Positions 1 through 9,936 of a stretch of 64,000 bases of DNA are shown here, in pieces. The notes beneath the pieces are model-generated. The model was given only the letters and a program-made list of their open reading frames with translations, made no database searches and was not told the origin of the DNA. Location: contig OZ025754.1 of assembly GCA_964019335.1 (NCBI GenBank), forward strand, positions 1-64,000, in the 5' to 3' direction. Made by a program: the position numbers and the translations under genes. Position 1 is the stretch's first letter. Each line of letters opens with the position of its first letter. The DNA comes from Diplonema japonicum. Its lineage: Eukaryota; Protista; Euglenozoa: Diplonemea.

Positions 1-535
1 GCGGGCTCCAAATGATAAAAATTCAAAAATAAAAATCTCAAAAAAGGCTTAAAAGAAGAAGAGGCAAATTCAAAAACATACTAGGGAGGAATGAGTGGGG
101 CAGGGGGTAAAATTTAGGAGGGGGAAAGAGGGAGAATCAAAAAAGGGGAAAGGGGCAGAGTGGCCAATGCCCATGCGAAAAAGCATAGAGGGAAGAAGAA
201 AATCAAAAACAGGAAAAACACATCACCACAAAAGAAAAAAGAAAAAAAAAAAAAAAAAAAAAAAAACGTCGACCGAGATGGTTCCACTTCAAAAAGAAAA
301 AGAAAAAGAAAAACAGAAAAATAAAAAAAAAAAAAAAAAAAAGGAAAAACAAAAAGAAAAAAAAAAAAGGGAAAAAAAAAAAAAATCTAAGTGGTTCTAT
401 CTAGCCTGGCCGTTGTAGCACCTGTTCCCTATTCTTTTATTTTTCCCTTTTTTTTTTTTCTCAGAAAAAAAAAAAAAAGTTTCACATCTTCCTATGGCGG
501 GGGGGGGGAGAACAGCCCCCCACACCCCCGCTGGC

Positions 536-1870
536 CTATCTGGCCAGCGAGCCTTTGGACCTCTTCTTGTGGGGTATGGGCCCCACCCGTGCCCTCCCCG
601 ACTCGAGCTGCAGCCAAGCCACCGCACTGTTCACCGGGGCCCAGTTCTCCTTGTTGCGCACCTTGACCGTGTCCCGCACCAGGTCGTCGCCCCCCAGCTC
701 TTCCATCAACCTGTGCTCCGCCAAGAACTTGAACTGGGGCCCGGTCATCCCCTTGAGCTCACCCCTGCATATGTTGGCTTCGACCACGGTGCCATCCGCC
801 CCCGTACCCTTCAGATAGATGTAGCCACCCTCCACACAATCCGAGTCAGTACTGGCCGATCGGGCCCGGGCCCGCTTCTTGTCCTTCTTTCTCCACTTCA
901 GCTCTTCCAGGGTGGGGAGATCCGTGGCAACCACCTCAGGCCGCCTCTCCCTGTCTTCCTCCTTCTTCCGGGCCAACAGCCCAAGGTACCTCTCAAAGGA
1001 GACGTCCTCGAACAACCCCGGGACCGTCACCACCGCTGACTGCAGGTCGACCTCTTCAACACCCATCTTCCGCAGATGGTCCTGGACAGTGCGCCTCGTC
1101 TCCTTCTCGCAGGGCCCCCTCCCCTCGTAGACGTCGAGGGTGACCTTCCTTCCATCCCTCACCCACGCCTTCACTTTGATCAGGTCCTTGACCTTTCCCA
1201 CTGGGGCCCTTATCCTTGCGTCGCACCTCTCCAAGAACTCACGTAGTGTCACCTTGGTAGCGCCGGCTCCCGCCGCAATGCCCACTACCCCTTCCTTCCC
1301 CGGTGTCGGGTGGTGTCTGCACCCCCGGGTCTGCAACTTGACCACCCTCCATGCCGTTTCCAGAGTCCCCTTGAGCAGGTTTGCGGGTTTGCGGGTTTGC
1401 GGGTTTGCGGGTTTGCGGGTCTCGTCCACTGACTTGCCGGCCCTGGGTTGTTTGTCGGGGTTCCACAGATTCCGCTGCCTGTGTAGTGCACAGTGCGTCT
1501 GGTTCGACGAGCACGCCGCAGCACACGTTCCACAGAGGTTCACCTTCATGTTCCTCGCCTGCTCTTGTTTCACAAAATGATGGTGGACCGCATTGAGGTG
1601 TTTAACTAGACAGCTTGCCACACTGGTGCGGAAAGAGCAGCCTTCCATCCGGCATTGATGTTTGTCTGTTCCTTCTTTTTCCCCCTCCTTCTGCGCCTCC
1701 GTGTGCTCATCATCCAAATCCATGGGGGGAGGGTCACCACCTCCTTGCAACGCGTCCCCTGCCAGCGTCAAGTCCGCAAAGGGGTCCAGGTGTTCGGCCT
1801 GAAAGAGCTTATCCTCCGTCTCGGCTCGTTCCTTCGCCGCTTGCTTGGCGTCTTCCTTCTTTTTTCTGCG
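536..1870 (-). CDS. Retroelement ORF1 distal part with C2H2 and CxxC zinc-finger motifs (in frame with 1871-4345 after one TGA)
   Basis: CRMEGCSFRTSVASCLVKHLNAVHH and CGTCAAAC...HCALH. The frame is open from 1870 (RRKKKEDAKQ...DPFADLTLAG) into the listed 536..1771 ORF. Confidence 0.6.
   Translation of the reverse strand, partial: RRKKKEDAKQAAKERAETEDKLFQAEHLDPFADLTLAGDALQGGGDPPPMDLDDEHTEAQKEGEKEGTDKHQCRMEGCSFRTSVASCLVKHLNAVHHHFVKQEQARNMKVNLCGTCAAACSSNQTHCALHRQRNLWNPDKQPRAGKSVDETRKPANPQTRKPANLLKGTLETAWRVVKLQTRGCRHHPTPGKEGVVGIAAGAGATKVTLREFLERCDARIRAPVGKVKDLIKVKAWVRDGRKVTLDVYEGRGPCEKETRRTVQDHLRKMGVEEVDLQSAVVTVPGLFEDVSFERYLGLLARKKEEDRERRPEVVATDLPTLEELKWRKKDKKRARARSASTDSDCVEGGYIYLKGTGADGTVVEANICRGELKGMTGPQFKFLAEHRLMEELGGDDLVRDTVKVRNKENWAPVNSAVAWLQLESGRARVGPIPHKKRSKGSLAR
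1378..1420. repeat. Tandem octamer (GGGTTTGC)x5 inside the element ORF
   Basis: Read directly; translates as RKPANPQT repeats in all three frames. Confidence 0.95.
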
Positions 1871-4345
1871 TCATGAGCTTCTAGGCGGGCCCAAGTACAC
1901 CGGCAGGTAGTGACCTCTCGATCCGCGTCTTGTCTTCCTCAGCTTTACCGGTCCGAATCTCTGGGTCGGGTCAGCACCAGCTTTCCCCACCATCACTTCC
2001 GACATGGCCCAGAGCGACATCAGCCCCCCTATCCAAACTGAAGTGCTTCCCACCAGAGTACCCCCTACTGCTAGCCAAGCGAGCTCCCCGGCGGACCATT
2101 CATCCCCTCGGGGCCCCACCTGTACCCTTGACCTGCGGGTGGTCCTCCTGTCGCTCCCCGGCCTCTTCCACAACACTGCCGCATGCAGGAAGGAGGGGGC
2201 CATCCCGATGCCCGCCCCCAGCACCTGCCTCACCCCTGGGATCAGCAAGAGGGAGACCAGGGCGACCCAGGCCCACGCCCCCAGGTGCTCCCATCTCACC
2301 CCTTCCTTGCTGTGTCCCGTCCGTCTGCGGTGCCTCCTTGTGCCGGTTGCAGCCCCAGGTGCCGGGATTCTGGGTGCCAGGGGTTGGGCTCCAGGCGTTC
2401 CCACCTCGGTCCGCTTCAGCCCCATTGCAGGGTCATCTGGCTTCTGTTTCAGGGCGGCCTCGTGTTCCTCTCTGCGGGCCCTCCTCCTCCCTTCTTTCCT
2501 CGCACGACGGTGCCTTTTCTTCTCCTGTCTGGCAGCCTCCCTCGCCCCCTCCCTCGCCTTGGTCCTCTTCTCCCGACGCCTCTGAAGGGCCGTTTCGCTC
2601 CTGTGCCTCCTCCTGTTCTTCTTCCGCTTGGGCGCTGGCTTAGGTTCCCTGCCACCCATGGCAATCCAGGGGGCTCTTTTCTGTCTTCTCACAAGGGTGT
2701 GCAGTGGTGCTCTCACGTCGCTCGCAGCCTCCGCCCCAACCACACCTTGGCGGGCGGTGGGGGTGGGTGCTGGGTCCCCCTGGTTGTTTGAAAAGAAAAA
2801 AGGTTCCTCCTTGTTTGTTTTTTTTTTTTCTTTCCCTTCCACCCTCAAAAAAAGCCCCCGGCCCTTGGGGACCAGGGTGTACACCTCCGTAGAGGGTCCA
2901 GAAAAAATGGGGGGCAGAGAGGGAGGGGCACTACCTTCTCTCGGGCGTGCTGTCTCTCCCTCTGCCTTTTTTTCCTCCGAAGAGGGTCTGTTTTTCACCT
3001 CCGTGGAGGGTCCCTCTGGAGAGGGCTCTATAAAAGAAAAAGGGGGGGACGAATGGGGGGGAGGAACACTACCCTCTCTCGGGAGTGCCACCTCTTCCCC
3101 TTTCTCTCTGTTTTCCTCCGAAGAGGGTCTGTTTTTTACCTCCGTGGAGGGTTCCTCTGGAGAGGGCTCTAAAAATGAAAAAGGGGGGGACAAATGGGGG
3201 GGAGGAGCACCACCCTCTCTCGGGAGTGCCACCTCTTCCCCTTTCTCTCTATTTTCCTCCGAAGAGGGTCTGTTTTCCTCCGAAGAGGGTTCTAAAAAAA
3301 AAAGGGGGGCGGGTGGGGCACTATCCTCTCTTGGGAGTGCCACCCCCCCTTGCCCACAAAAAAGGGGATCTAAAAAAGGGGGTTCGTCTGTTAACCCAGG
3401 GGATGGGTCTTCCTGGGGTGTGCGGGTGAGCTTGGGGCCTACCGCACGCAGGGTGATCGACACCCTGACACCAGTGGACATCCCGGACGGGATGTGGTGC
3501 GTCCACTGGTGTCTCGCTTCACCTTCCAACAATGCCCATGAGAAGGGGGGCACCAGGTATTTCGCCACCCTGTCCCCCCTCCTCATGACCATTGTGGTCT
3601 CGGCTCCGTACGAGAGGACTAGGACAATCGGTCCCAGCCTCGCGTCGTCCTTGTGGGCGGCAATCCCACAACCAGACTTGTACTTGTTGACAAGTACCTG
3701 GTTGGGGACCACCTCGAGCCCTGCGGCGGCGGCCACCTCCCTCACCCACCCCTCCGCCCCCCCTGGGATCCCCGTGGTGGGGCGCACCTTGGCGTTCGTC
3801 CCCTCCCACCGGTACCCGTATTGGAGGGTCTCCCTCCCTGAGTTCCCAGACAGGGCCTCCCACTTTCCTGAAAGCAGGGCTTTCGGGAAGGCAGGGGCCG
3901 GGCCCGTCCTCAACCCGGGAGGGTGTTCACCATACACCAGTACCCACCCCTTTTTTTCTCCCTCTTTTCCTCCCTCTTCAACAATAGCAGGGTCGGCTGC
4001 AGGGGTCGTGGTCGCGGCGGTCGTGGCTGCGGCAGGGGCGGCTGCGGCGGTCTCAGTTGCGGCGATCAGGGCGGCAGGGTCGGCTGCGGCGTTCAGGGCG
4101 GCTGGGGCGGCCGTGGCTGTAGCAGCGGCGGTCAAAACCGCGGTCTCTGCTAGTGATTTTTTTATTTTATTATTTTTTTTTTCTAAAGGGGGGTGGGGGG
4201 ATCTAGGGGGTGGGGATTCATACTGCCCAACCAGATTGCCTGGTTGGGTGGGTCTCGGCGCCGTGTGCTGCGGGCTGCGGGCTTGCTCCTGCGGGCTGCG
4301 GCTGCGGCTGCGGTCACCTCCTCCTGCGAGTCGTCTTGGATCCAT
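1871..4345 (-). CDS. Retroelement ORF1 proximal part with AlkB-family 2OG-Fe(II) dioxygenase domain (about 3440-3840), repeats and hydrophobic segments
   Basis: RETLQYGYRW...PNQVLVNKYKSGCGIAAHKD...LSYG...LLEGEARHQWTHHIP...RVSITLR matches the AlkB motifs NxY, HxD, H and RxSxTxR. Confidence 0.85.
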   Translation of the reverse strand: MDPRRLAGGGDRSRSRSPQEQARSPQHTAPRPTQPGNLVGQYESPPPRSPHPPLEKKNNKIKKSLAETAVLTAAATATAAPAALNAAADPAALIAATETAAAAPAAATTAATTTPAADPAIVEEGGKEGEKKGWVLVYGEHPPGLRTGPAPAFPKALLSGKWEALSGNSGRETLQYGYRWEGTNAKVRPTTGIPGGAEGWVREVAAAAGLEVVPNQVLVNKYKSGCGIAAHKDDARLGPIVLVLSYGAETTMVMRRGDRVAKYLVPPFSWALLEGEARHQWTHHIPSGMSTGVRVSITLRAVGPKLTRTPQEDPSPGLTDEPPFLDPLFCGQGGVALPREDSAPPAPLFFLEPSSEENRPSSEENREKGEEVALPREGGAPPPHLSPPFSFLEPSPEEPSTEVKNRPSSEENREKGEEVALPREGSVPPPHSSPPFSFIEPSPEGPSTEVKNRPSSEEKKAEGETARPREGSAPPSLPPIFSGPSTEVYTLVPKGRGLFLRVEGKEKKKTNKEEPFFFSNNQGDPAPTPTARQGVVGAEAASDVRAPLHTLVRRQKRAPWIAMGGREPKPAPKRKKNRRRHRSETALQRRREKRTKAREGAREAARQEKKRHRRARKEGRRRARREEHEAALKQKPDDPAMGLKRTEVGTPGAQPLAPRIPAPGAATGTRRHRRRTGHSKEGVRWEHLGAWAWVALVSLLLIPGVRQVLGAGIGMAPSFLHAAVLWKRPGSDRRTTRRSRVQVGPRGDEWSAGELAWLAVGGTLVGSTSVWIGGLMSLWAMSEVMVGKAGADPTQRFGPVKLRKTRRGSRGHYLPVYLGPPRSS
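2880..3350 (-). repeat. About 141-bp (47-aa) imperfect tandem repeat, about 3 copies, within ORF1
   Basis: Recurring EEVALPREGxxPPPHxSPPFSFxEPSPExPSTEVKNRPSSEENREKG; TTTTCCTCCGAAGAGGGTCTG near 2969, 3111 and 3252. Confidence 0.9.
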
Positions 4346-4515
4346 TTTTTATTTTTTTTTGTTTTATAGTGTGTGTTGGGGGGGAGGGGATCCTTTCGTT
4401 GAGCGGCGGGCAGGCCGACGGGCAAAACAACCCCCCCGGACGACGGCGACGACGGACGACGGACGCAGCGGCAAACCCAGGCAGAGGCGGCAGGCACCAG
4501 CAGAACACGAACGAC

Positions 4516-4553
4516 CAATAAAGTACAGAAACTGTAGCTTTAGAATCGTTGGT
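4516..4553 (-). other. Spliced-leader exon copy 1 (ACCAACGATTCTAAAGCTACAGTTTCTGTACTTTATTG) followed by GT
   Basis: Carries the conserved euglenozoan SL 3' end CAGTTTCTGTACTTTATTG and a diplonemid-type 5' end; identical to copies 2 and 3. Confidence 0.92.
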
Positions 4554-5005
4554 CCTCCAGCGCCTTCTCATCAAGCACCCTAGAGAGCCACCTCTGGCTG
4601 CAGATGTGGGGGGCCTTGGCCACCATGTCGGGTGTAATCTGCATGCCGCCTTTCGTCCTGTTGAACCACTCGAGCCAGCTCCCCCATACACCCCCTTCCA
4701 GCCCATGTTCGTATTTGGGATCCAGCTCCTTGCACAGCTTCATCGTCGACGCCCTCGAAGCCATGTTGGCCGCGCGCAGGTGCTCCTGGCAGCTCCTCAT
4801 CCCAAGCCCACCGACTTTTACGGACAGTTTCGCCTGCTGCCATTCTTTCGACCCGCTCTCGAACTGCATGCCGCACACCTTCGACATCGTCTTCCGCACC
4901 ATCTCGTCGAACCTGTGCATGACCCCTCCCACATGCGAGTCTGGGACCACTCTCATGTAAAACACCAGTTTGCTGTATGAGCTGCAATACCGGAGAAGAC
5001 ATATA
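4554..5005 (-). pseudogene. Fragment of non-LTR reverse transcriptase C-terminal/thumb region (CRE-like)
   Basis: LLRYC...KLVFYMRVVP...FD...WQQAKLSVKVGGLGMRS...AANMAS resembles the LLRxC and QAxLPxxxGGLG thumb motifs of RLE-clade elements; truncated by SL copy 1. Confidence 0.75.
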
Positions 5006-5222
5006 CTCATACTTCTGGCGTTTGTAGTGTTCCGCCTTCGCCGCTGCGTACCCCGCAGTCTTCGCCGCCTGGTTGACACAAGACTCGTTCCTCGGGTGCA
5101 CGATGACCACGTCCATAGCCATTGGGCGGGAACCCCCCACCCCACCTGGGAAGAACACGTCCGCCGGGCGCTGGGACGACCCCGGGATCAGCCCCGTCTT
5201 CTCCATCGTTGCGCTCACCCCG
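5006..5222 (-). pseudogene. Fragment of restriction-like endonuclease (RLE) domain of a CRE/R2-superclade retrotransposon
   Basis: E...RPADVFFP...MAMDVVIVHP...AAAKAEHYKRQKYE fits the RPD-x-D...K..KY RLE signature. Confidence 0.75.
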
Positions 5223-5248
5223 GCCCACTGACAGTGTCTGTGGATGGT

Positions 5249-5657
5249 GGAGGGGGAAAGAGGGAGAAATCAAAAAGGGGAAAGGGGCAGAGTGACCAAT
5301 GTCCATGCGAAAAAGCGGGGGAAGAAGAAAATCAAAAACAGGAAAAACACATCACGGCATGGCGTCGTGTGCAGCCTGGCGGCCTGTCGGGGTTCCCTCC
5401 CTGCGGTTTGCATGGTCACCTCCTCTTGCGTTCCGTCTTGGATCCATTTTTTATTTTTTTTTATTTTTTTTTAAAGTGTGTTGGGGGGAGGGGATCCTTT
5501 CGGTAAGCGGCGGGCAGGCCGACAGGCAAAACAACCCCCCCGGACGACGGCGACGACGGACGACGGACGCAGCGGCAAACCCAGGCAGAGGCAGCAGGCA
5601 CCAGCAGAACACGAACGACCAATAAAGTACAGAAACTGTAGCTTTAGAATCGTTGGT
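5249..5657 (-). mobile_element. SL-headed element copy 2, internally deleted derivative
   Basis: SL+GT, near-identical 5' UTR and ORF start (MDPRR, ATG 5447), then joined to the segment that lies at 117-226 in copy 1. Confidence 0.8.
5620..5657 (-). other. Spliced-leader exon copy 2 followed by GT
   Basis: Identical 38-mer to 4516-4553. Confidence 0.92.
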
Positions 5658-5826
5658 CCACCTCCTTCGCGTCCCTCGCGTGGTCCTCCTTCGTCGCTGC
5701 CTTCACCACCTTCATCGCGAACACCTTCCCGTCAATCTCCCTCACCGCCATGTGCACCGACCCCTGGCCCCCTGACCCGAGGTGCTTCCCTTTCCTGTAC
5801 TTTTCAAAGTTCTGCATTTCCTGCAT
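5658..5826 (-). pseudogene. Protein kinase N-lobe truncated by the SL-element insertion
   Basis: YRKGKHLGSGGQGSVHMAVREIDGKVFAMKVV...AKEV contains GxGxxG, AxK and the alphaC Glu, then runs directly into the SL exon. Confidence 0.8.
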
Positions 5827-5865
5827 CTTTTCTTGTTTTACGGTGTGTTCTTCTTTTTTTTTTAA

Positions 5866-7646
5866 CCCATAACACTCCGGGGCCTATCTACATAGGGGTC
5901 CCTTTTTTGCTCCTTTTCATAATCTGAGGGGGAAAATGGCAGCATTCAACCCCCGTTTGCAGGTAAAACGGGTTTTTTGGGCCAGGAAAATTAAAAAGAA
6001 AGTTCAAAAATTAATAAAAATACAAAGGGGATGAAGAGTTGAATGGCCGTAGGGTGCTCAAAAACGACCATGTTTACGGGTTTGCAAAATGGGTTGTGCA
6101 CGGGGGGGTGTAAATTGAGCATCCTGGGACAAAAAAGGCAGCATCAGGACCCCTCAGATGTCTCAGACCGAGAGAAGTGCCTATTTGCGGGTGGAATATC
6201 GGCCTCGAAATCGTCAAGAGGCCTTTTTGGGGTGATGGAAGAGTGGTACGAAAAAAGCACTTATTTGGACAGAGGTGTTGGTTTCAGGTGTAGCATTTGT
6301 AGATTGTGCGTTTTGTGCATTCTTTCAACCTGCAGACCCTGGAGGTGCCCCCTTTGAGTGGCTAGCGGTCACGTTTGGTGTAATCTGGGGTATCGGGTGT
6401 GTGTGCACCACTAGTTGGGTGCCGGGAGTGGTGTTTTTGCAACGTTGAACCCATCAATTAGGCTCTCTCGAAAGCGCTCTTTAAAGCAGCCAGGGTTGTG
6501 TATCTCTTTGGCATCCCTGAACCATATTTTATTTGAAGTGCATGGCAGTTAACTATTGTCACTTCTAGGGCCCACCAGAAGAGTCCGCAACACCCAACGA
6601 AATGCAAGCCCCTCACAGCAGGGCTTCGGCCAGACCCACAGTCGAAAAGTAGCTATCGCAAACTACCGTGTTGTCATTTCCCCGGAAAGGCTCTGTTAAC
6701 CCCAGCCCCGCTTTTTCCACAACACTGAAGTCTTCAAGTGCGTGCCCCTCGATTTTGGTGGATGTGAAACGCAAAAGATAACCCGTGCTCGCGCAGTTTA
6801 GGCAGTAGATTTTTATGCCATATCTTTTACGCTTGAAAGGACAGTAGACCCGCAGCCCCCAATTGCCCCGTGAAGGTACGAGTGTCTCGTCAATGCTTAA
6901 ATATTTTCCTGACACTGCTGCTTTTGCCCACTTGTCACCAATTCTGTCCAGAAACCCTCGTATCTTCACAACACATCACCGTTTGACTCTTCTGTGTGAG
7001 TGAAGCGGAGGCTACTTTTGATTTCCCAGTAGCGTCTCCTGGGCATCGTGTTACTGAAAAGGGGGATTTTCATGGGTCCTGTGGACCAATACGACTGCTG
7101 ATTCTGGGCACGCCGTAAACCCATCGCAATGCTCAATCCGAGTAAGCGGTGGAGTCCTGGGTCGAAATTTTATCAATCTCAGCGTCCTTTTGCCTGTTTG
7201 TCTCTTCTTGGATGACGTCTGTTAGCTTCTTATAAAAAAACCGAAGGAATAACCATTTTGCGTCGTCAAGTTTCTGCGTACCACGGGACAGCTTTTTTTC
7301 TCCCCACTGGCCTATTTTATGGTCTCTATGGGTACCAACTCCCTTACCCATGAAGGTTGGACCTCGTCCGTAGCTGTTTTGGCTTTACCTTTGCGTTTTT
7401 TGGGAACAATTTGAGCACAGTATGCACACCCGTTATTTTGCGTTTTTAGCCTATCTACTCGGATTTGGGACCCACTTGGTGGGTGGATAACAAGGTAAAG
7501 TGATGCAGCGCAGCATTAATTGCAGTTGAAAATAACTCCTCACTATAGTCGTGCTTGGAGATCCAGGGGTCGTGGGGACGAAAAAGTACTTAGAGAAAAA
7601 AACGATTTTTCAAAACGACAAATATTTGCGCCTTGGATGTTATGGG
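5866..7646 (-). mobile_element. Degenerate piggyBac DNA transposon with TIRs and TTAA target duplication
   Basis: TTAA(5862-5865)-CCCATAACA ... TGTTATGGG-TTAA(7647-7650). Transposase remnants: SIDETLV...YCPFKRKRYGIKIYCL...DSYFST (6613-6969) and LFWWALEVTIVN (about 6530-6575). Confidence 0.88.
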
Positions 7647-8809
7647 TTAATGTAAATCTCCACTGTGTGATGGATTTCTTCCCCCCCCCCCCCGTGTTGA
7701 GAGAATGAAAAAAAGCATAATATAACAACAGGGCCCCCGGTTCAAAATGGGTTTTTTTCCGATGTCACATGCCGTCTGCTTGTCGGCATATCATGAAACC
7801 GTCTCATGACGTAACCGAAGGAATTGCGGATAGTAGCAAGAAGAACTCTATCGATGCAGGGCTTAGGAAAGAGCCCTCTAGAGTCTCCCTGATGTCGTGG
7901 TTGATGGGAGAAGCACTTGTCTTGAGCTTGAAAAGCTGCACCCTCTTCCACATTTTATCCTTCGCCTCTTTGCCAAGTTCTATGGAGAACTGATTGCCTA
8001 AGTGGTGAAGCAACGGCTCGACCAACTGCTTAGCTGTTTCGATTTACTGTACTTTATTTACCGTGCTGATTTGCCGCACTTTACTTTGCTGAACCTTGTT
8101 GTGCCGTGCCTTGCCCTACCGTACTTTATTTTGCCGTACCTTTTGATTTTCTTTTTTTTTTTTCACCAGTGAATGAAAGCACGCAATGTCGCATACCGCC
8201 TCACATGGTCGATCTTTTACGTCAAGGTGACAAGTCAAACCCGTCTTGCTCCCCCTATGCAGTACGGATGTGAGCCTGTCGTGGTTCGAATGAAGATATC
8301 GTAAAATGCGATAAACTAAAAGGCAGCAAAAAGCCTATGCAAAGGGAGGAAGAGGATACTAGGAACTAGGCAGTTTGTTTCAGGTAAGACACCCCTGGAG
8401 TATATGGGACAACATGTTTCTTTGACAAAAAAAAGTAGATGATAGACTAAAAGTGGTATCGCAAAAAAAGAGAAAAAAATGGGGCTTTGATTGCAACACT
8501 AGGTGGCGTTAAGCGTGCAACGAAGCACGAACTACCTACTTGATTACAGGGGGCGCTCCTCGGCCGAGCAGTAGCTTCTTCTGCGTTCCGTGTCGTGTCC
8601 TTAATGCGTGCGGTGTGCAACTCAACCCTAGTCGGTGCGTCCCGGATAACCAAGATTCTGCGCTCGTGCAGTTTGCTGCCTGTTCGTCACCCAGAGCATC
8701 TGCGTTCTCCCACTCGGGCGCTATCGGTGATGACCGACGAGGAGGTCAACAGCTAACAACACATCTGATGTACTTCTTATATTTCCATGTTATCCCCACC
8801 ACCCTAAAA

Positions 8810-8941
8810 GTGTCTCGAGTTCCTCTCCTTGGAAGGGGAGGTGGTCGAGAAGCGTACAAAAAATTCTGTATATGGCTTATTGATCATGGATCAGATTGGG
8901 TACCAATAAAGTACAGAAACTGTAGCTTTAGAATCGTTGGT
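8810..8941 (-). ncRNA. Solitary SL RNA gene-like unit (SL exon 8904-8941 plus intron-like part)
   Basis: SL exon, GT donor, hairpin TGATC-CAT-GATCA, Sm-like AATTTTTTG, hairpin TCTCGA..CCTCCCCTT/AAGGAGAGG..TCGAGA, then TTTT. Confidence 0.6.
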
Positions 8942-9084
8942 AAAAAAAAAGGGGGGGGGGATATTCCCAACTACCAAAAGAGACAGAAGAAGAAGAAGAA
9001 GAAGAGAGTGAGAAAAAAAAACAAATAATCAAGTTAACAAAAATCTATCTTGTCAAGCAACTTGCCACATATTTCTCCGTTTCT

Positions 9085-9936
9085 CTATTCATTTACACTT
9101 ATCCCCTCTGGTATCCTATTCTTCAATACCTCGTAAAAACTATCAGAGCTTCCACTCAAGTCGATGATTCTTAGATTATCGCACTTATACATGAACACGT
9201 CACCAATGTAATTAAGATTGATCATCGCACTCAAGTCGATGGTTTCTAGTTTTTCACACCCATACATGAATGCATCACCCACGTAATAAACATTGGCCAT
9301 CGAACTCAAGTCGATGGTTTCTAGTTTTTCGCACCACGACAAGAAGGAATCACCAATAGAAGAAACTTTGTTCGTCTCGCTTAAGTCGATAGATTTTAGG
9401 TTTTTGCACTGATACATGAAAGCCTCACCAATGGAAAAAACATTGGGGAGGCTGAGATGGACAGATGTCAGGTGGTCGCACCCCCTGAGAAACTCATCGT
9501 CTATAGCTGTAACACAGCCTGTGGAGTCGGTGACAACGAGGCCCCGAAGTCCAGAAGGAAGGTCCCCTGCCGCCATGGACAGATATTCATCCGAGCCCTC
9601 CACTTCAACCACCAAGACTAGCTCAGGGTCAGCTGCCACAAGCCCCTCCAGCTCTGAAACCACTTCTGAGTTCTCTCTCCTCAGCTCTTTCAACCCCACG
9701 GTTCTCATTATCACCTCTACATGAACTTCACAGCCCTCCACGAGCCCGATCTCTTGAACCTCCTCACCACTGTTCATGTCCAATACCTCTCCCTCCCAAA
9801 CCAGTTTGAACTTGCCCTCGAGTAATCCAGAAGCACGGGCTGCCTTCTTGTACAGGCTCCCCATCGTCTCCTTACCCGAAACTTCCACATCGTGAACCCC
9901 GCTTTTTGTCTTCAGAAACACTGTCACCCCGTCCAT
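9085..9936 (-). CDS. Ubiquitin-like domain plus leucine-rich-repeat (BspA-type) protein
   Basis: N-terminal VTVFLKT...FKLVWEGEVL...IGLVEGCEVHV; repeats of IGDxFMYxCxxLxxIDLS. Confidence 0.8.
   Translation of the reverse strand: MDGVTVFLKTKSGVHDVEVSGKETMGSLYKKAARASGLLEGKFKLVWEGEVLDMNSGEEVQEIGLVEGCEVHVEVIMRTVGLKELRRENSEVVSELEGLVAADPELVLVVEVEGSDEYLSMAAGDLPSGLRGLVVTDSTGCVTAIDDEFLRGCDHLTSVHLSLPNVFSIGEAFMYQCKNLKSIDLSETNKVSSIGDSFLSWCEKLETIDLSSMANVYYVGDAFMYGCEKLETIDLSAMINLNYIGDVFMYKCDNLRIIDLSGSSDSFYEVLKNRIPEGISVNE

Follow-up and report, generated by a model that had tools for sequence, protein, structure and literature searches.

Retrotransposons of the CRE clade (CRE1/2, SLACS and CZAR of trypanosomatids) insert inside the spliced-leader (SL) exon of SL RNA genes, and to our knowledge they carry neither an AlkB nor an OTU domain. 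Here we describe a retrotransposon of the diplonemid Diplonema japonicum in which both domains stand in one open reading frame (ORF) with the reverse transcriptase (RT) and in which a whole SL forms the 5' end. The DNA analyzed, termed the window below, comprises the 64,000 nucleotides at the start of contig C107 (OZ025754.1, forward strand) of assembly GCA_964019335.1 (62.5 Mb, 132 contigs). It holds broken copies of the element, and intact copies lie elsewhere in the genome; all comparisons were made between natural copies. Like CRE1/2, SLACS and CZAR, the element occurs in a euglenozoan host, has a single ORF of the type without long terminal repeats (non-LTR) with N-terminal zinc fingers, RT, a C-terminal CCHC motif and a restriction-like endonuclease (RLE), and is associated with the SL. 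While CRE-clade elements insert within the SL exon, the element described here is found at chromosome ends and bears a complete SL, at the 5' end alone.

Spliced-leader exons are among the listed targets (PMC4640811). The RLE elements NeSL and Utopia encode a cysteine protease upstream of the RT, as does the element from D. japonicum; however, their protease is Ulp1-like instead of OTU, they have no AlkB domain and their targets are SL1 or U2 genes (PMC4640811). The combination of AlkB with RNA-based replication is found in RNA viruses (Alpha- and Betaflexiviridae, Closteroviridae, marine picorna-like viruses), where AlkB likewise lies inside the replication polyprotein. In betaflexivirus replicases, AlkB adjoins an OTU-like protease. 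The viral polyproteins contain an RNA-dependent RNA polymerase where the element has an RT, and viral AlkB domains are only ~15-25% identical to that of the element. A retrotransposon encoding its own AlkB has been described in Phalaenopsis, but there it is a plant Ty3/Gypsy LTR element with a recently acquired, separate AlkB ORF close to the host ALKBH9/10 (PMC9289625), whereas the AlkB described here has long been an in-frame part of a non-LTR polyprotein and has no near paralog in the host.

With regard to location, the element resembles Bombyx SART1/TRAS1, Drosophila HeT-A/TART and Giardia GilM/GilT, which also occupy chromosome ends as head-to-tail arrays in which full copies stand beside truncated ones, with telomere-type repeat junctions and a fixed orientation. 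SART and TRAS encode an apurinic/apyrimidinic endonuclease instead of an RLE, and insertions of the element are also found outside repeats. Its 3' end points outward, which is opposite to the orientation of HeT-A/TART. Relic spliced leaders in dinoflagellate retrogenes, reportedly described by Slamovits and Keeling in 2008, are similar in that SLs are DNA-encoded on retroposed sequences and in that a truncated SL, beginning after an SL-internal AG, follows a fresh full SL; in D. japonicum, however, SLs are carried mainly by an autonomous retrotransposon, and few relic forms occur. Full-text literature searches returned no description of AlkB in a non-LTR element or of this diplonemid family.

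AlkB and RT in one polyprotein

The intact copy at locus L032 (contig C9) has an ORF of 2804 amino acids (9770..1356), in which Pfam profiles recognize AlkB (residues 166-299), an OTU cysteine protease (942-1047) and RVT_1 (1447-1650). AlkB, OTU and RVT_1 are likewise present in a second, independent intact copy, L033. The RVT_1 match has an E-value of 2.8e-16 in both copies; the sole PDB matches of the RT are R2 proteins, and its best database matches are unnamed or come from Symbiodinium, sponges and Asteraceae, at 30-38% identity. Inspection of the L032 translation further revealed a C2H2 finger, the RT thumb (LLRYCSSYSK...GGLG), a CCHC motif (C..C..H..C) and a PD-(D/E)xK-like motif, RPADV...MDVVIVHP...K. 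Intact ORFs of ~2800-3000 amino acids lead from a low-complexity N-terminus through AlkB, proline-rich repeats with a basic tract, C2H2, OTU, RT with thumb, CCHC and RLE to a C-terminus of ~700 amino acids; the C-terminal 694 residues gave no match in Pfam or the Atlas. A full-length copy measures ~9.3 kb, and copies of a sister family recur with a period of 10.7 kb. With an RT in the ORF, a C-terminal CCHC and endonuclease motif, no LTRs, a poly(A) tail and many 5'-truncated copies, the element is an RLE-type non-LTR retrotransposon (R2, R4, CRE, NeSL, HERO group). AlkB is linked to the RT because intact copies elsewhere in the genome encode both in one ORF. A preliminary description of the window had proposed a retroelement that encodes its own AlkB-type domain, and the presence of AlkB, RT and RLE in one ORF of intact copies bears this out.

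The same description had noted a complete-looking AlkB domain at about 3440-3840 of the window. The ORF at this site matches the Pfam profile 2OG-FeII_Oxy_2 (PF13532) well above the curated cut-off (E = 7.8e-14; 52.8 bits against 31.2) over residues 167-300, that is 3847..3446, and all the motifs NxY, HxD, H and RxSxTxR named there are present (Table 1). In an alignment of 35 AlkB sequences H231, D233, H283, R294, R300, N220 and Y222 fall into invariant or nearly invariant columns, and the catalytic motifs are also kept in the element families B and C. An AlphaFold2 model of the domain reached a mean pLDDT (predicted local distance difference test score) of 88.9, and among the top matches listed by Foldseek against the PDB all belong to the AlkB family: ALKBH6 and ALKBH8 in the lead, then NMAD-1, ALKBH2/3/5 and AlkB, with E-values from 1e-11 to 1e-8. 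Model and matches together display the AlkB-type double-stranded beta-helix. By sequence, the best solved relative is human ALKBH8 (E = 2e-9), followed by Ofd2 of S. pombe and ALKBH3/2/6. ALKBH8 is a tRNA wobble-uridine hydroxylase. On motifs and predicted fold, the window domain can be taken as an established AlkB-type dioxygenase; "demethylase" is an extrapolation, because the nearest solved relatives are ALKBH8, ALKBH6 and Ofd2.

The AlkB ORF is not single-copy, since a genome-wide comparison with the 824-residue window protein gave at least 75 matches, of which many fall within open frames of 2700-3000 amino acids. A whole-genome search with the AlkB profile gave ~10 strong, internal, host-like hits and ~85 weaker, element-type hits, nearly all of the latter near contig ends. 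At least three element families can be distinguished; compared with family A, AlkB is ~85% identical in family B and ~67% identical in family C. The dN/dS of AlkB between these families is 0.22-0.27 (Nei-Gojobori), and the deficit of nonsynonymous changes is significant (p ~1e-8 to 5e-8). When one intact family-A copy was compared with one intact family-C copy (2990 amino acids, from a tandem on contig C24), AlkB was the best conserved of the named domains with 70% amino acid identity (omega 0.25), followed by the RT core with 55% (0.23), RLE with 38% (0.51) and OTU with 33% (0.55), where the omega values for domains other than AlkB are only rough, as their dS between families approaches or exceeds saturation. 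A maximum-likelihood tree placed the AlkBs of the element in a clade of their own (support 96/98) apart from the ~10 host AlkB genes. The other outcomes that the preliminary description had considered, namely an AlkB that is never linked to RT or RLE, that groups with a host ALKBH ortholog or that decays neutrally, are thus contradicted by the shared ORF, by the separate clade and by a dN/dS of ~0.25 (p ~1e-8), respectively. AlkB is shown to be a selected part of the element, present in three diverged families of this genome and in Diplonema papillatum.

Two observations on the families may be added. The C24 tandem (C24:6263-28518; L036, L049) consists of three full-length family-C copies (ORF ~2990 amino acids) with a period of 10,659 nt, and its spacers are not telomere-type repeats. 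Compared with L007, L015 and L036, the L032-type element has its first ~354 nt in common with family C (98-99% identity) but the remainder with family A, which suggests recombination or template switching between families.

Relatives in Diplonema papillatum

A HMMER search of 1.84 billion representative proteins found nothing nearer than ~35-40% identity. Most matches were small metagenomic AlkB proteins, and the three long ones came from D. papillatum; an earlier word-indexed search limited to proteins of 1542-4900 amino acids had given no long AlkB fusions, and it was the exhaustive HMMER search that found those of D. papillatum. KAJ9442719.1 (2635 amino acids) has AlkB, OTU and RVT_1 in the same order as the element and is 34% identical to the element ORF over 1353 residues, through CCHC and RLE. 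It is deposited as "Retrotransposable element SLACS 132 kDa protein, partial", and other D. papillatum fragments as "tRNA (carboxymethyluridine(34)-5-O)-methyltransferase", an ALKBH8-type automatic annotation. Public D. papillatum sequences of the family are therefore available, but mis-annotated. The automatic "SLACS" naming is the sole hint of membership in the CRE clade; site-specific insertion into SL exons was not found for the element. The paper on the D. papillatum genome names "SLACS reverse transcriptases"; apart from these it speaks of a dozen AlkB-type genes, interpreted as host regulators, and it also reports DNA methyltransferase homologs (PMC10161547). From its presence in both D. 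papillatum and the genome studied here, the domain layout is old; shared AlkB ancestry of the two rests on domain order because the deep nodes of the tree are not resolved.

In other public data sets, assembled contigs tile AlkB, OTU and RT almost contiguously. One public run of unspecified kind gave 19,145 short contigs on L032:4001-10000 with summed depths of 1e5 to 2e6, and runs labeled as three other organisms hold the element at 99% identity.

The spliced-leader head

The preliminary description had reported a full SL exon followed by GT at the head of the element, and this is confirmed: in copy A of the window, the exact 38-nt SL ACCAACGATTCTAAAGCTACAGTTTCTGTACTTTATTG (ACCAACG...TTTATTG), of the diplonemid/kinetoplastid type, lies at 4553..4516 of the minus strand with GT directly behind it. 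The window contains three SL matches (4553, 5657 and 8941), where none is expected by chance. In the whole genome, 59 of the 62 exact copies of the canonical 5' untranslated region (UTR) start are preceded by the exact SL end, the other three by a mutated SL or a variant with a TG insertion. What lies upstream of the SL differs among ~35 heads: (CCCGCAAA)n in some, in others another copy's poly(A) tail, fragments of coding sequence or unrelated DNA. The SL is found only at the element 5' end. At the 3' end, a variable number of a 26-nt repeat and a poly(A) of 6 to >60 A is followed by (CCCGCAAA)n, the next SL head, a 5'-truncated copy or unrelated DNA, and never by an SL intron. SL-gene targeting of the CRE/SLACS/CZAR kind, which the preliminary description had invoked, does not agree with these junctions.

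A few copies carry the SL at other points, and these variant junctions are informative on its origin. The SL is fused at element position 162 in three loci and at position 5323 in one locus, in both cases where AG precedes in the reference, and in two loci at position 23, within the SL itself; the latter junction consists of a full SL plus the relic TTTCTGTACTTTATTG, which begins just after the SL's own CAG. Such relic forms are rare (2 of ~40 heads). AG precedes three of the seven variant junction classes, against an expectation of 1/16 per class (p = 0.007), and this excess is the signature of trans-splicing followed by reverse transcription. Two further classes are preceded by TG or TTG, matching the SL 3' end, and are thus compatible with template switching or microhomology deletion. 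There are strong grounds to conclude that the SL head was copied from an RNA template and is not the remnant of an SL-gene target, and, with equal strength, that in this template the SL forms the extreme 5' end, having been added by trans-splicing at AG acceptors in at least some cases.

The sequence behind the SL was considered as a possible SL-gene intron. It is no more similar to the three SL-gene intron types than are shuffled sequences (p = 0.31-0.80), and an intron with an Sm-type site, as in an SL RNA gene, was not found at the head; the reading of GT as a retained SL-gene intron start was rejected for want of similarity to SL-gene introns. Most simply, GT belongs to a G-initial exon, because nearly all sampled SL-headed copies start with G, and G-initial starts are expected downstream of AG/G acceptors. 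An Rfam search of the element 5' end for ribozymes, HDV-like elements (hepatitis delta virus) and the SL RNA family gave no match, and the predicted fold of the 5'UTR is no more stable than that of shuffled sequence (z = 0.13).

Further features of the head were noted. SL nucleotides 4-10 (AACGAUU) can pair with the first seven nucleotides after the SL (GGUCGUU; window 4510-4553, minus strand), and this is largely kept in the family-C-type head. The SL position that deviates or is lost most frequently is position 1, which lacks its A in 4 of 35 element heads (L013, L023, L031, L033) and in 6 of 20 other SL-headed copies (L053, L060, L061, L068, L070, L071), a difference between the two groups that is not significant (p = 0.14). 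Odd 5' junctions occur in L030 (~160-250) and L013 (1150-1260): one repeats ACCAACGATTCTAAA with oligo(A) ahead of a full SL, and in the other a second SL comes after an SL with 16 nt of 5'UTR. Both have the look of template switching repeated at the 5' end of the RNA.

Location at chromosome ends

Copies cluster within ~10-40 kb of contig ends, interleaved with (CCCGCAAA)n and with 5'- or 3'-truncated sisters; possible internal copies are those on C64, C98 and C115. Below coordinate 20 kb there are 33 protein matches, every one of them on the minus strand, whereas no plus-strand match out of 38 has so low a coordinate (p ~1e-10); plus-strand copies on contigs of known length are 1.6-10 kb from the right end. 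Because of the strand bias at left ends and the plus-strand copies at right ends, the copies can be said to aim their 3' ends at contig ends. The contig ends themselves are (CCCGCAAA)n arrays of a few hundred bases on the strand running 5' to 3' toward the end (e.g. positions 1-634 of L032 on C9). Hence it is the 5' end of the G/T-rich strand (TTTGCGGG) that lies at the terminus, whereas canonical telomeres have the opposite polarity. Nowhere in the assembly does (TTAGGG)4 occur, and a TERT candidate is present at C41:533974. A text search of the literature for the 8-nt repeat by its sequence gave chance hits only. With its confinement to chromosome ends, its fixed polarity and its terminal-repeat junctions, the element is a chromosome-end-associated non-LTR retrotransposon, with frequent insertion into the terminal repeat and into copies of itself.

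Possible roles of the AlkB domain

We propose that AlkB may act in cis on the element's own RNA or ribonucleoprotein (RNP) and remove base methylation that stalls the RT or marks the RNA, a proposal to which we give slightly better than even chances. The RNA template of the element would carry the SL at its 5' end and would be copied through to nucleotide 1. By oxidation, AlkB would probably strip the bases of those methyl or alkyl groups that bring the RT to a halt or single out the RNA for control by the host, and the OTU protease would probably release or serve the N-terminal module by polyprotein processing, or act as a deubiquitinase. The proposal is based on analogy with the AlkB of RNA-virus polyproteins and of orchid Gypsy elements. 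Many RNA viruses have an AlkB domain in their polyprotein, RNA demethylation in vitro has been reported for plant-virus AlkB, and demethylation of N6-methyladenosine (m6A) in vitro has been shown for the AlkB carried by orchid Gypsy elements (PMC9289625). Several points weigh against it. The closest solved relatives, ALKBH8, ALKBH6 and Ofd2, show low identity and are not classical erasers of 1-methyladenosine and 3-methylcytidine (m1A/m3C) or of m6A. An RNA starting at SL nucleotide 1 would have to be regenerated from copies with a DNA-encoded SL, yet among the 62 5'UTR starts there is no SL-less master copy with an AG acceptor, and no 5' ribozyme was detected. The RLE domain is identified by motif only, as the libraries searched hold no profile for it, its CCHC and RPAD..D..K motifs aligning with the D. 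papillatum protein; the saturation of dS mentioned above also belongs here. Among public runs, none recorded as RNA held the element, and Logan contigs cannot show RNA ends. The cis action might be directed more narrowly at the cap, AlkB stripping cap-proximal SL methyls (cap-4-like, e.g. N6,N6-dimethyladenosine, m6,6A, and 3-methyluridine, m3U) from the element's SL-capped RNA, after which the RT reaches nucleotide 1. The entire SL from nucleotide 1 in dozens of independent insertions, the frequent miscopying or loss of just this position and an intact AlkB domain under selection speak for this idea, but the SL begins with ACCA and so offers no U at position 4 for m3U, other SL-headed retrocopies without AlkB also extend to nucleotides 1-2, the position-1 errors do not differ significantly between the two groups, and the nearest structures are not known erasers of m6,6A or m3U. 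We thus consider cap stripping improbable, and the same doubt applies to the statement that AlkB erases base methylation on the SL-capped template, cap-proximal marks included, so that the RT would copy SL-bearing RNAs to the first nucleotide. If it were true, and if other SL-headed RNAs are mobilized by the same machinery as well, the genome would be shaped by an RNA-demethylase step that a retrotransposon provides.

A different substrate is conceivable as well. As a tool of counter-defense or of chromatin, AlkB could have as its substrate the DNA of the chromosome-end target or the new cDNA (with, for example, N6-methyladenine, 6mA, or other alkylation), or else RNAs or proteins of the host, and so blunt subtelomeric silencing. 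The residence of the element in chromosome-end arrays would fit, and its structural neighbors include the DNA-directed ALKBH2 and ALKBH3, the 6mA-linked NMAD-1 and the protein- or histone-linked Ofd2; D. papillatum has DNA methyltransferase homologs and a dozen AlkB-type genes (PMC10161547), and DNA transposons carrying TET/JBP dioxygenases provide a precedent (PMC12730594). However, the polyprotein AlkBs of other replicators with an RNA genome or intermediate have been assayed only on RNA, and the position of AlkB at the N-terminus of the RT polyprotein favors action in cis on the RNP, so that we regard a counter-defense role as rather unlikely. That AlkB is a captured fragment or retrocopy of a host gene, a passenger without function, is scarcely credible: the window copy is indeed dead and without RT, and D. 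papillatum homologs are auto-annotated as a host tRNA methyltransferase, but AlkB is in frame with the RT in every intact copy, has a dN/dS of ~0.25 (p ~1e-8), is the most conserved domain between families A and C and has been kept in another genus at 34% overall identity, with no host AlkB gene close to it. As for the SL head, it might be the upstream half of an SL-gene target as in CRE, SLACS and CZAR, with transcription from the SL RNA gene promoter; the auto-naming of D. papillatum homologs as "SLACS 132 kDa protein" and the RLE type with N-terminal zinc fingers could be taken in its favor. This explanation is very unlikely, since the ~35 heads are flanked by telomere-type repeats, poly(A) tails, coding fragments and unrelated DNA, the 3' junctions are poly(A) followed by non-SL sequence, the SL is whole and not split at nucleotides 11/12, none of the only nine SL-gene-type loci was seen interrupted, and the sequence after the SL is unlike SL-gene introns.

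It is rare for a further enzymatic domain to become fixed in a non-LTR retrotransposon. That AlkB matches the RT in conservation implies that in diplonemids, which are among the most abundant marine protists, retrotransposition meets a real obstacle, or a point of control by the host, in the methylated bases of RNA (or DNA). The element thereby offers a natural system in which to ask what AlkB does in replicators with an RNA intermediate, parallel to the AlkB-bearing RNA viruses, and its SL heads and chromosome-end arrays make the reverse transcription of trans-spliced RNAs and the build of chromosome ends testable. For D. papillatum, our findings suggest that part of the "dozen AlkB homologs" and of the "tRNA methyltransferase" annotations should be re-read as transposon genes.

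Organization of the window locus

On the minus strand, broken copies of a single family of RLE-type non-LTR retrotransposons with poly(A) tails were shown to be piled up over window 5657..1 (Table 1). Mapped onto the intact reference, copy A spans element positions 1-2963. It is dead: the stop TGA (1873..1871) corresponds to CGA in intact copies, where the frame runs on past it, and copy A itself has no OTU or RT, the RT and RLE pieces nearby belonging to other truncated copies; of the RT, the window contains just the thumb fragment. In alignments of its proline-rich repeats to other copies, residues 411-446 are absent. Directly upstream of its SL lies the thumb fragment of another copy and not an SL gene. 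The second copy contributes the last ~250 codons of the polyprotein (stop 538..536) and the 3'UTR, which is cut by the contig end. The preliminary description had placed a sister copy beside RLE and RT-thumb fragments; both do adjoin the head at 5657 and are 99% identical to the full-length element, but they are parts of other truncated copies and not of the sister copy.

Table 1 Features of the element copies in the window (positions in the window; residue numbers refer to the copy A ORF)
Feature	Position	Strand	Remark
5'-truncated second copy	1..1385	-	98% identical to element positions 7755-9117
(CCCGCAAA)4 filler between 3'-truncated copy A and 5'-truncated copy	1386..1420	-	same repeat caps contig ends
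Copy A, same frame continued beyond stop	1421..1870	-	C2H2 motif CRMEGCSF...HLNAVHHH from ~1654; ends at polyprotein residue ~927-935
Copy A, 824-aa ORF, ATG at 4345	1871..4345	-	N-terminal third of element polyprotein; ends at TGA
Copy A, two 141-nt tandem repeats, proline-rich coding	2970..3251	-	repeat number differs between copies
Copy A, AlkB-type Fe(II)/2-oxoglutarate (2OG) dioxygenase domain	3446..3847	-	Pfam envelope; modeled fold ~3371-3988
R294-x-S-x-T-x-R300	3466..3446	-	AlkB motif, 2OG-binding arginines
H283	~3499..3497	-	AlkB motif, iron triad
H231-x-D233	3655..3647	-	AlkB motif, iron triad
N220-x-Y222	3688..3680	-	AlkB motif
Copy A, 170-nt 5'UTR	4346..4515	-	starts GTCGTTCGTG (GTCGTT); 97% identical to window 5483-5662
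Copy A, complete 38-nt SL at 5' end	4516..4553	-	exact match; followed by GT
RT-thumb fragment (LLRYCSSYSK...GGLG...) of another truncated copy	4551..4998	-	99.6% identical to element positions 5339-5786
CCHC end and RLE fragment (RPADV...MDVVIVHP...K) of another truncated copy	5006..5248	-	99.2% identical to element positions 6062-6304
3'UTR fragment	5249..5355	-	matches element positions 8893-9006 and window 117-197
Copy B, SL head (5657..5620), 5'UTR and first codons only	5429..5657	-	internally deleted

The (CCCGCAAA)4 filler at 1386-1420 joins the two truncated copies in frame; it resembles a telomere-type repeat added to a broken end before a new insertion. At 5658-5826 (minus strand), the N-terminal fragment of a protein kinase (GSGGQGSV...AMK) is broken exactly where the SL head of copy B starts.

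Other spliced-leader copies

The genome contains 214 copies of the SL 3' half, of which only 9 have an SL-gene intron as at window 8941, and well over 100 of the 214 are neither element heads nor one of these intron-type loci. The 20 internal SL copies sampled are SL-headed copies of other sequences or possible variant SL genes. The SL-RNA-like gene of the window (8150-8941, minus strand) comprises the SL and GTACCCAATC...AATTTTTTG..., up to CTTTTAG right before GGTGGTGGGGATAACATGG. In L054, L056, L060 and L072 the SL is fused straight to the sequence downstream of CTTTTAG, which corresponds to a retroposed spliced form. In a dispersed family (L059, L061, L062, L064-L069, L071), the SL is followed by GT(A/G)TC(C)GACCGTGCCAATAAAG, and a T-rich tract precedes each copy; these may be variant SL RNA genes or SL-headed repeats similar to short interspersed elements (SINE-like). 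Beside the SL-like gene, a coding-like region of the window (9153-9452) holds four 75-nt tandem repeats, and the remaining part at 12800-64000 has very many intergenic poly(A), poly(T) and polypyrimidine tracts of 30-60 nt.

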